A stretch of DNA of 63,885 nt, counting the filler, from Olpidium bornovanus S191 (taxonomy: Eukaryota > Fungi > Olpidiomycota): NCBI GenBank assembly GCA_017911155.1. It is 31 parts of 31 records of this genome, joined end to end, with 100 filler letters (N's around TTAATTAATTAA, not from the genome) between each part and the next. Parts side by side here need not be neighbours in the genome. Positions count along the whole stretch, not along the records: positions 21,623 to 24,695 come from JAEFCI010011222.1; 30 more parts are not named here. One strand, given 5' to 3'. Shown here one piece after another: positions 20,883-24,891 of this stretch (position 1 is its first letter; every line of letters starts with the position of its first letter). The notes beneath the pieces are model-generated. The model was given only the letters and a program-made list of their open reading frames with translations. It ran no database searches and was not told the DNA's origin. The position numbers and the translations under genes are program-made.

Positions 20883-21900
20883 AGGGAGGGAGTGTGTGTG
20901 TGTGTTACCCTCGAAGTCTCCGCGCACTGGATTCCGATCCCTGGGCGAGAAGCCGGACGGCGGAAGGGACTGGCGATAGCCGCGACGATCGTGATTCTCT
21001 CGACTCCGCAGCATTCTGCCCTCTTTGAGGATGTGCGGCGCGCCAGGCAGAAGCCTCAGCCGAATCGACTGGGCCAATCAAATCTGGACACGGTCCGCCA
21101 GCCGGTTGCCAAGCAACCCTTTCCACAGCCAACCCCCCCCCCTCCACCCCCACTTCCCCCCCGTTCCGGCCAGCCTGGAAGCACGGCTTGCCCGAGATCA
21201 ACGCGCCCGCGCTCGCGTTCGAGCGCTCCCCCCTCTTCCTCCGCCGCAACACAAAGAAGGAAACGAAAAAGATCGTTTGCTTGGCGGATAGAATCACAGG
21301 CTTTCCGGGGGGCAAGAGGAAAAAGGGGAAGAGGTAAGTTGTAAGATGTAATGGCCCGGGGCATCCGCCTCATCGCAAGGGATGTATCGCCCGCGGCGAG
21401 GTCATGCTTCAACTCCTGAACGCATTCTATTATCTGCATTTCCGCCGCGGCGTCGGTGAGGCCCCGGTTTTTTCTAAAAGTTTTTTTTCGGCGAGTACTA
21501 AGACCGGGCCGGGGGAATTGACNNNNNNNNNNNNNNNNNNNNNNNNNNNNNNNNNNNNNNNNNNNNTTAATTAATTAANNNNNNNNNNNNNNNNNNNNNN
21601 NNNNNNNNNNNNNNNNNNNNNNCATGCAAATAGAGCTTTATGGGAAACGAGCGACCAGACGGGGCTACAAAATACGGAAAGTCAATCGGGCAAATGCTGC
21701 GGTCGGCTACGTCGTGGCGCGTGTGAAAGAGTCCCGACAGAGAGAGAGCCTTAGCTGGCGGCCGCGGCATGCGGAAGCATAACGGCGAAAGACCTAGACC
21801 GCGTGATGCTTTCTGGTGAACAAGCGTGGGGGGCAGAAAGGGGGAAAATAATAAAAAAAAAACCCACAACAGCGGGGGGAGGAGCGGGGAGGGAGGGTGA

Positions 21901-22881
21901 TCAGTGCGCCACGACGGGGAGCATTTTGCAGTCGCCGGGCGGCACGTGCTTCAAGGTAAGCCTGCCGCCGCGGGCCCGCCGAAACAATCCCCGAGAAGCC
22001 CTCGCGCGGTGCTGACCGTGGTCCAAAGGCGACGAATCGTCCGGGCGCTGCGAGCCGCGCCTCTCGCCGGAGGAGGGGACCGGCGGCGACGGCCGCCCCC
22101 GCGCCGCTTTGGCCGCCGCCGCCGGCGACCGCGGGAACCGGGGCGCCGCCCCCGCCGCCGGCGACAGGTCCGGGGGATAATTTGACGGCGCGAAGCCGGG
22201 GGGGCGCCGCCCCCGGTCGGAGTACCCGGCACCGCGTCGCCGAGGGGGGCCTTGCTTCCCGCCGCGGATGCCCGCCGGACGCCGCGGCGCGGCTCCGCGG
22301 GGAACGCCGGTGGCGGCCGGCGGCGCCCCGGATGCGCGCGGCGCGGCGCCGGCGCCGGACGCGTCCCGGCTCGTCAACGCGGGCCGCGAGGACCGCCGCC
22401 GCCGCGGCGGGAAAAACTCGTCCGCGCTCGCGGCCGGCGCATCTTCATCCTCCGCGCGCCGCAACGCCGCCTCCGCCTCCAGGCCCTCCTCGCCGTCCTC
22501 CTCCTCCTCCTCCTGTTCGTCGTCCTCCTCCTCGTCGTCCACCTCGTCCTCCTCGTCCTCGTCCTCCTCCGCCTCGGCTTCCGGCGGCGCCTCGCGCCGT
22601 TCCCGCGACGCCTGCGGCAGCTGCCTCGCCGCCTCCGGCGCGGCCCTCTCCGCCTCCAGCGCAGCCCTCTCCGCCTCCAGCCTCTCCGTGGCCTTGCGGT
22701 AGGCGCTCCTGAGCTGCAACAGCTCCAGGGCGTCGTTGAAGGTGAAAGGGGCGGGCTGGTCGGGCGCCCTGCCCGGGTAGTCCTCCCGCGCGTAGGTGTA
22801 GAGCACGGTCACCTCGGGCGCAAACGAGACGGTCCGCTCCTTCAGGACGGCGGCGGCGGCCGTGGAGATCCTGCGGAGCAT
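21901..22881 (-). CDS. Uncharacterised protein with a PP1-docking (RVxF-type) motif and an acidic tract
   Basis: MLRRIS...LKERTVSFAPEVTVLYTYAREDYPGR resembles the KxVxF...TYsxeeYdR PP1-binding segment of Bni4/neurabin-type proteins; followed by a short coiled coil and a poly-Glu/Asp run. The 3' end is uncertain. Confidence 0.5.
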   Translation of the reverse strand: MLRRISTAAAAVLKERTVSFAPEVTVLYTYAREDYPGRAPDQPAPFTFNDALELLQLRSAYRKATERLEAERAALEAERAAPEAARQLPQASRERREAPPEAEAEEDEDEEDEVDDEEEDDEQEEEEEDGEEGLEAEAALRRAEDEDAPAASADEFFPPRRRRSSRPALTSRDASGAGAAPRASGAPPAATGVPRGAAPRRPAGIRGGKQGPPRRRGAGYSDRGRRPPGFAPSNYPPDLSPAAGAAPRFPRSPAAAAKAARGRPSPPVPSSGERRGSQRPDDSSPLDHGQHRARASRGLFRRARGGRLTLKHVPPGDCKMLPVVAH

Positions 22882-23033
22882 TGGCTCTTTTTTCTTTTTC
22901 TTTTTTTTTTTTCGTCCTGTCTGGCGTGGGGGCGGCGCCGTTGGCGTTCTCTCTTTCTCTGTTCTCGCCTCTTTTTTTTTTTTTTTTTTTTTCTCCCCCC
23001 TTCCCCCCCCCCCCCCCCCGACCCGCTGCCAAA

Positions 23034-24103
23034 ATGGTACTGGCCCCCGCGCGGTTCGCCGCTCCTCTTGCTGCGCGCTCCCTTCCGTCCCCGTCCCCGT
23101 CCCCGTCCCTCCGTGTCGGCCGTCGTCGCCCGCAACGGCCAGAGGACGAGGAGGAGTGGGGCGACGGGCGACGTGGGGGGCGCTTCTTCCGCCCTGACCT
23201 GCGAACCCCGCGCCGTCGACGGTCGTGGTTGATGCGCCTGGGCGACACGTAGAGATAGCCGTAGCGCCCGCCGGGAAAGCCCGGTAGGCCGAGCCCCAAG
23301 CAGAGGACCCGTCGTGAGCGACGCGAACCCACACGTGCACCGCACGGCGCTTGCCGTGTATTTCGCCGCGGAGGACGACCTCAGTGCGGCAGAAAAGGGT
23401 CTTGCTGCAGAACCGGAGTTCGGGAAACGCTGACCTGCGCAAACTTTCCGGTCGTTTCTGGCGTTTTTAGGTCAACGTTCCGAAAACCCGCAACACCTAC
23501 TGCAAGGGCAAGAACTGCCGCAAGCACACCCCTCACAAGGTTTCTCAGTACAAGGCCGGAAAGGCCTCCCTTTCCGCGCAGGGTACGTGTCGCTTGCGTA
23601 TTCCCGTGTTTGGCAGCGTTGTTTGCCGGCGGACTTAGTAGCACACTTGCCTACTTCGTTTGGCTAATTCCGGAAACGACGCTGGAGGCGGCACTGCTTC
23701 CTTTTTAATCGTTTTTCGGGTAAATAGGTAGGCGACGTTACGACCGTAAGCAGTCCGGTTATGGTGGCCAGACGAAGCAGATTTTCCACAAAAAGGCCAA
23801 GACGACAAAGAAGGTCGTCCTGCGCCTTGAGTGCACCGTCTGCAAATACAAAATGCAGGTTCCCCTGAAGCGCTGCAAGGTGTGACTGCGACACGACGGT
23901 TTGCATGCTGTTCTGTGCGCTGCTCGTCCACTGACTCCCAGATTTTCGTTCGACTTTCCCTGCGCAGCACTTTGAGCTCGGTGGTGAAAAGAAGGTAATT
24001 TTTCCCACTGTGTTTCACAAGTTATGCGTACCTTGTTGGCTGGGCAAACTCAACCTTTTTTTCTGTCTACTTGCAGACCAAGGGCGCCGCACTTGTCTTC
24101 TAG
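23034..24103 (+). CDS. RPL42: 60S ribosomal protein eL42 (L42/L44/L36a); join(23034..23036,23471..23582,23728..23879,23968..23994,24077..24103)
   Basis: The five exons total 321 nt (106 aa + stop): [106 protein letters not shown]. Confidence 0.97.
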
Positions 24104-24891
24104 CATACACTGTATAAATCCTCAAATAATACCTGTTCACGACACAACTGGATTTTTAGTTTGCGGCGGGTGATGCAAACATCTGCGCTGTTTTACCTGC
24201 GATGAGGAAAGTTCTCGGTTCTCCGTACATGGGAACACGGCGGTGCTCGAAATTTTTGTTTCTCAAGAGGATGTGGTTGCGGGCGTTTCCTGCCAGTTTG
24301 ATTGTTAAACCCCGTGGCGTCAGTGGTGGTCTACAACCCTCGCTGAATTATAAATATGAAGAGTTGTGCGAAATGATGTCTTGCGTCCGCATCAAAACAT
24401 GGCTTGTTGGTGTTAATTATTGAACGTCACACGCTGCCAGACGACTGGTTTGCAAACGAACGGCTAATGTCGTTTGAGCCGGCAAGTACCTACTGAAGTC
24501 TTCGTCTTTCTGGAACGACCCCGTTAAGTAAAAAAGTCTGCAGTCACCCGCTTCGAAACACCGGTTGGGAATTGCGGCATGGTGCGGCGCACGGAAGGGC
24601 GGTGAAATGGTCTTCACAACAACCAAAGAACCACAAGCAAAGCGGAGGAAGAAGCAAATGGTGTATCAAATGAGAGCACTATATCTGATCACGGANNNNN
24701 NNNNNNNNNNNNNNNNNNNNNNNNNNNNNNNNNNNNNNNTTAATTAATTAANNNNNNNNNNNNNNNNNNNNNNNNNNNNNNNNNNNNNNNNNNNNGATTT
24801 CGGAAAGCGAAACCGTGCTATAGCGAAACCTTCTCCAAACTCTTCCTTACCCCACTTAAACGCAAACAAAAAGAAAGAACAAAAACTCACC

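Follow-up and report, generated by a model that had tools for sequence, protein, structure and literature searches.

The window (the whole stretch of DNA that was analysed, 63,885 nucleotides with filler) contains a complete gene for the ribosomal protein eL42 (yeast L41/L42/L44, human RPL36A), in which codon 56 specifies glutamine, the residue that acts as a cycloheximide-resistance determinant in several yeasts. We put at about 70% the probability that this is a working eL42 of a fungus outside the Saccharomycotina and that its Gln56 confers the drug tolerance predicted by analogy with the known glutamine-type proteins. The gene lies on the plus strand within the piece at 21623-24695, and its spliced product has 106 amino acids. 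A sequence-only reading of the same DNA had placed CAG at codon 56 of the complete spliced gene; its coordinates proved to be exact, and the glutamine aligned with Gln56 of Candida albicans eL42. Gln56 is a discrete residue, and a chance pattern is excluded.

Table 1. Features of the eL42 locus, in positions of the whole stretch
Feature	Position	Strand	Basis or remark
Divergent 326-codon ORF	21904-22881	-	Begins 152 nt upstream of the eL42 ATG
Pyrimidine-rich intergenic stretch, 82% C+T on the plus strand, with T12, T21, and C17 runs	22882-23033		Between the divergent genes
Putative start codon ATG, the sole coding bases of exon 1	23034-23036	+	Comparison; followed by donor GTACTG
Intron 1, 434 nt	23037-23470	+	Acceptor AG at 23469-23470 confirmed by the X1 contig
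Exon 2, residues 2-38 and base 1 of codon 39	23471-23582	+	X1 contig, profile
Intron 2, 145 nt, phase 1 in codon 39, GTACGT..AG	23583-23727	+	Absent from the spliced X1 contig
Exon 3, residues 39-89, with the E-site loop	23728-23879	+	PF00935, 5.5e-20
Codon 56, CAG (Gln); Pro in nearly all homologues	23778-23780	+	Read directly
Predicted intron 3, 88 nt, GTGTGA..AG, at the K89/H90 junction	23880-23967	+	Frame, GT..AG ends, homology
Exon 4, residues 90-98 (HFELGGEKK)	23968-23994	+	Gene reconstruction
Predicted intron 4, 82 nt, GTAATT..AG, 3' of K98	23995-24076	+	GT..AG ends, homology
Exon 5, residues 99-106 (TKGAALVF) and stop codon TAG	24077-24103	+	Gene reconstruction

When compared with the Pfam profiles, exon 3 matched the Ribosomal_L44 family with 72 bits (cutoff 25), and exon 2 extended the match to profile positions 1-20. 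The window protein was also matched by 54 eL42/L44e chains in the PDB. All four zinc-ribbon cysteines (C12, C17, C74, and C77) and the basic E-site loop are present, and the drug-facing residues around Gln56 (K55, F58, H59, and K60) are unchanged. Each of the four introns starts with GT and ends with AG. The first coding exon is modelled as a lone ATG after the ATG-GT structure of relatives: position 23034 is the sole ATG followed by GT between 22900 and 23470, an intron directly after the ATG also occurs in Basidiobolus ranarum, Allomyces macrogynus, Blastocladiella emersonii, and Chytriomyces sp. MP71, and the donor of A. macrogynus at this site is the same as that in the window. The phase-1 intron in codon 39 is common to the window, Basidiobolus, and Chytriomyces, and Allomyces and Blastocladiella have an intron inside codon 98, 2 nt from the position of intron 4. 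The first introns of A. macrogynus (about 700 nt) and B. emersonii (about 590 nt) are very long.

Judging by its position, the pyrimidine-rich stretch upstream of the gene is presumed to hold a bidirectional promoter and a short eL42 5' UTR. The divergent ORF beyond it looks like real coding sequence (GC3 of 0.91-0.96 and GC2 of 0.55 over its first 600 nt) and would encode an N-terminal RTVSFAPEVTVLY segment and a long acidic run. Searches of this ORF returned no Pfam family, only low-complexity noise, and no such called gene or product was on record; the Rfam search of the piece gave no match. In A. macrogynus (L082) and B. emersonii (L083), a CytochromB561_N gene is located divergently upstream of eL42, and the upstream ORF of the window showed no similarity to it. 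Within the piece (21923-24695), the GC content drops from 0.83 at 22100-22400 to 0.46-0.53 at 23600-24600, and GC3 is 0.75 in the eL42 coding sequence versus above 0.9 in the neighbouring ORF.

Among solved structures, the best match of the window protein was C. albicans eL42 (7pzy), which has the motif QTKQIFHKK and agrees with the window at every position from residue 41 to residue 74. In the four alignments listed after it, headed by 7r81 and 7olc (which we take from their entry codes to be Neurospora and Chaetomium), residue 56 is proline. Besides the identical segment, C. albicans eL42 (7pzy; PMC9132455) shares Gln56-Ile57 and the length of 106 residues with the window protein. The two proteins differ elsewhere: the window residues R40, T75, Y79, M81, and V83 correspond to K, V, T, A, and L in C. 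albicans, and position 22 is proline in the window but glutamine in the ascomycete group. The N- and C-terminal parts of the window protein are of the non-ascomycete type, unlike those of C. albicans, and its gene has four introns.

The functional effect of Gln56 has been demonstrated in C. albicans by structure and by cell-free assay. Cryo-EM showed that the Gln56 side chain of C. albicans clashes with the glutarimide group of cycloheximide, and C. albicans extracts keep translating in the presence of the drug, whereas translation halts in those of S. cerevisiae and rabbit (Zgadzay et al. 2022; PMC9132455). Gln56 is the resistance determinant in K. lactis, and an engineered P55Q substitution caused complete cycloheximide resistance in C. 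elegans with no visible cost (PMC12132315). The claim that a proline-to-glutamine change at residue 56 is an established cause of resistance is upheld by these three cases. The primary work cited in PMC12132315 (Kawai/Takagi 1992; Dehoux 1993) is quoted there for natural Gln56 in L41 as the resistance determinant in K. lactis, Candida maltosa, and Schwanniomyces occidentalis; these proteins share the natural Gln56 with that of the window, but all three species belong to the Saccharomycotina, unlike the window. P56Q is also mentioned as a selection marker in Salpingoeca rosetta, S. pombe, and CHO cells. In these systems and in C. elegans (P55Q), sensitive laboratory backgrounds were engineered to carry the same substitution, whereas the glutamine of the window is natural.

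The mechanism is thus established on a loop identical to that of the window, and its effect transfers across opisthokonts; we infer that it operates in the source organism as well. The E-site loop of eL42, which lines the pocket seating the glutarimide ring of cycloheximide, here carries Gln56-Ile57 in place of Pro56-Val57, and the glutamine side chain would narrow the pocket and repel the drug. Ribosomes with such an eL42 would bind cycloheximide weakly, and related glutarimides probably likewise, and an organism with such ribosomes would tolerate cycloheximide. The source is probably cycloheximide-tolerant, because Gln56 makes yeast ribosomes insensitive.

The gene was also sought in public sequencing runs. 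No single public run was found to contain the whole stretch; the runs that match it in part (holder runs) share 6-16% of its words. Four runs were aligned to the stretch, and X1, X5, X18, and X24 were among the runs examined. A contig of 529 nt with a depth of 140 in run X1, which is labelled RNA as a guess, joins 23118-23282, 23470-23581, and 23727-23874, with GT..AG at both joints; it is the one assembled contig in which expression is seen. It confirmed that intron 2 is spliced out and that intron 1 ends at the acceptor 23470/23471. The contig equals the window in its 5' part and differs from it by 4 and 12 letters in exons 2 and 3, respectively. All 12 itemised differences are at third codon positions and synonymous, four more near the ends of the pieces having been left unitemised. 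Positions 23778-23780 are identical to those of the window, with the codon well inside the ends of the contig.

The X1 contig is therefore a second, diverged copy (a paralogue, homeologue, allele, or the gene of a close relative) with the same protein segment and Gln56, and eL42 is under purifying selection. A diverged copy that has synonymous changes and retains the same CAG argues against both a sequencing error and a pseudogene. No alternative letter at codon 56 was found in contigs within 90% identity in the runs aligned to the stretch, and run X5 contained a DNA-like contig identical to the window over 23199-23438. The large raw RNA runs X18 and X24, which bear the species label of the holder runs, had 0 and 1 reads on the eL42 gene. 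For a ribosomal protein gene such counts indicate that the holder-run label is probably not the source; the labelled species is probably a host or an associate. A separate record of run X1 (record 2, at 23495-23529) is a contig of 92 nt with a depth of 9 that encodes a different eL42 N-terminus, MVNVPKERR... (AAAATG GTG AAC GTC CCC AAG GAG CGC AGG); residue 56 is outside its span. The fragment derives either from a further eL42 gene or from a different organism present in the X1 sample.

The sole transcript form seen, that of the X1 contig, does not use the donor after the ATG at 23037; instead, a donor GTAGGC at 23283/23284 is spliced to 23471. In the resulting mRNA, an upstream ORF of 73 codons runs from the ATG at 23034 to the stop codon 23250-23252, and no in-frame start precedes Val2; this mRNA therefore cannot make eL42. 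This form would be a minor or unproductive one that the assembler retained, and the true 5' end, a few bases of UTR and the ATG, would be a short tip of the kind clipped by de Bruijn assemblers. The 23283/23284 donor could reflect regulated unproductive splicing or an assembly path.

Candida maltosa has proline-type and drug-inducible glutamine-type genes together. If the source had such a two-gene system, a Pro56 copy elsewhere would supply most ribosomes, and tolerance would be weak or dependent on induction. We regard this as unlikely, even though at least two diverged eL42 copies or alleles exist, X1 contains the third eL42-like fragment with a depth of 9, and the only transcript form seen from the window locus is non-productive. 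Both readable copies have CAG at codon 56, the contigs within 90% identity contain no other letter there, and the depth of 140 of the diverged copy is typical for a main ribosomal protein gene. The part of the genome visible to the analysis is the 3 kb around eL42; were a Pro56 paralogue located elsewhere, the drug-sensitive ribosomes built with it could limit tolerance to a partial or conditional one.

Gln56 is rare. Pro56 had been described as the usual residue, and the counts bear this out: the homologue set of 382 sequences, selected by similarity to fungal queries from a database clustered at 90% identity, in which variants may hide in clusters, contained 374 Pro and 6 Gln in 380 motif instances. 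The six Gln56 homologues were from two Ogataea species, three yeast-like sequences, and Ophiostoma piceae. Among metagenome loci related to exon 3 (80 loci, 81 instances), 79 instances had Pro, one had Gln, and one had Thr; the Gln56 locus (L067) is from a Candida-like yeast, the Thr is in a degenerate copy, and the Pro56 set spans algae and animals besides fungi. The word searches used alignments of the window exons with full-length relatives, as well as the L067 loop region, as queries, and ten clusters were opened. They did not return the window's own protein; the best identity was 91%, to Radiomyces (Mucorales), with Microbotryum, Phenoliferia, Chytriomyces sp. MP71, and Rhizomucor next at 89.5%.

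The named early-diverging fungi were uniform at residue 56. All named zoosporic fungi surveyed, about 33 species, had Pro56: approximately 28 chytrids (including Spizellomyces, Batrachochytrium, Synchytrium, Rhizoclosmatium, Chytriomyces, Cladochytrium, Rhizophlyctis, and Powellomyces) and five blastoclads (three Allomyces species, Catenaria, and Blastocladiella). Pro56 was also found in all of the approximately 40 zygomycete-grade and other early-diverging species surveyed. If the source is zoosporic, its Gln56 is an exception among such fungi. The rarity of Gln56 outside yeasts had been overstated, as the filamentous ascomycete O. piceae has it. Three Smittium sequences (P0141, P0381, and P0382) are named '60S ribosomal protein L44 Q' yet have Pro56; the label was copied from the glutamine-type protein of C. 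maltosa, and the name is misleading. A soil metagenome contig (L063, Ga0137420_1403966) has two eL42 copies on opposite strands, of which the intact one has Pro56 and the second reads GGQTKTVF, has frame damage around it, and looks like a pseudogene.

Two further residues of the window protein are unusual. Residue 40 is Arg (codon 23731-23733), whereas it is Lys in 198 of 198 fungal homologues, and residue 36 is Ser (codon 23576-23578), whereas the same 198 homologues have F, A, Y, V, or W and none has Ser. Lys40 of yeast eL42 is a site monomethylated by Rkm3; with Arg at this position, an Rkm3-type monomethylation of Lys40 therefore could not occur in the eL42 of the window. Gln56 might be functionally tolerated drift or one part of a wider lineage-specific change of the E-site loops (S36, R40, Q56, and I57), arisen without selection by glutarimide antibiotics and with any drug tolerance as a by-product. 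The presence of S36 and R40 in the same protein, the wild-type appearance of homozygous P55Q C. elegans (PMC12132315), which indicates near neutrality in the laboratory, and the sufficiency of one base change from CCG to CAG all speak for such an origin. We nevertheless hold it to be improbable, slightly more so than a two-gene system: the proportion of Pro56 among the motif instances and its conservation in algal and animal loci show that the position is strongly constrained, and the known Gln56 exceptions are organisms noted for cycloheximide tolerance.

An artefact, be it a sequencing or assembly error, a contaminating yeast contig, or a pseudogene, is largely refuted: the contig that carries the gene is only 3 kb long, its GC content shifts sharply, and the species label of the holder runs is seemingly not that of the source, but the independent contig of the diverged copy has the same codon, the X5 DNA contig agrees with the window, the frame is open with canonical splice sites and synonymous itemised differences, and the protein is unlike that of a yeast (P22, T75, and Y79, four introns, and the best identity to a mucoralean).

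The placement of the window protein was examined in a maximum-likelihood tree of 50 rows and 105 columns. A strongly supported split (100/98) separated an ascomycete-type group from the early-diverging fungi and Basidiomycota; all six other Gln56 rows are on the ascomycete-type side and the window is on the opposite side. The nearest rows were Radiomyces, Chytriomyces sp. MP71, Umbelopsis, and Basidiobolus, with no well-supported clade holding the window. Placing the window beside the ascomycete group cost only 1.6 lnL units and was not rejected (AU test, p = 0.18). Among five columns that separate the groups, the window is non-ascomycete at P22, T75, and Y79 and ascomycete at V4 and A30. A contig of Basidiobolus ranarum (P0101) proved to be unrelated DNA: it has a GC content of 39%, and exon 3 alone of the window DNA aligns with it, at 75%. 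By its sequence, the eL42 of the window appears to be of the early-diverging-fungus/Basidiomycota type, with a weakly supported placement, and its source is probably outside the Ascomycota. The protein is fungal and, in view of the four introns of its gene and its different termini, certainly not that of a Candida-type yeast.

On this tree, Gln56 requires at least three changes, and its origin in the window is likely to be independent of the yeast and Ophiostoma cases. The independent evolution proposed in the sequence-only reading holds to this extent; in the AU test, uniting all seven Gln56 rows cost 34 lnL units and was not rejected (p = 0.07, 105 columns). A wider interpretation, which we offer tentatively and consider rather doubtful, is that of an early-diverging and perhaps zoosporic source fungus with Gln56 fixed in all eL42 copies and an E-site surface remodelled with S36 and R40. 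It would then represent the first case of natural resistance to glutarimides at the target site outside the Dikarya, of at least a third independent fungal origin, in a lineage shaped by glutarimide-producing actinomycetes. Selection by soil streptomycetes is speculation.

The eL42 of Ophiostoma piceae (EPE08299.1, P0199) has Gln56-Ile57 as in the window and comes from a filamentous, non-yeast fungus, but the protein is that of a Sordariomycete (TSCKAKKQLPLKRTK) and, unlike that of the window, is placed among the ascomycete-type sequences in the tree. The eL42 of Ceratocystis lukuohia (P0278) has Pro56-Val57. Ophiostoma is a classic cycloheximide-tolerant genus, and Ceratocystis is sensitive. 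Gln56 versus Pro56 would simply explain the cycloheximide character that has long been used to separate the two genera. A cycloheximide medium is mentioned for an ophiostomatalean fungus in PMC7441637, which cites Harrington 1981, and our literature search found no paper tying the Gln56 of Ophiostoma to its cycloheximide tolerance.

In the sequences surveyed, residue 56 tracks the known tolerance, Candida, Ogataea, and Ophiostoma having Gln, whereas Pro is found in Ceratocystis and in zoosporic fungi such as Blastocladiella and Allomyces, on which cycloheximide has classically been used. The eL42 of the window is an added case of a known natural target-site resistance, the mechanism itself not being new; as a further lineage, after several yeasts and Ophiostoma, it strengthens residue 56 as the main route to glutarimide tolerance. 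Should the source show the phenotype that its sequence predicts, cycloheximide would not serve to block its translation (for example in ribosome profiling, chase, or germination studies), a P56Q marker would be useless for selection in it, and cycloheximide media could serve to isolate it selectively.
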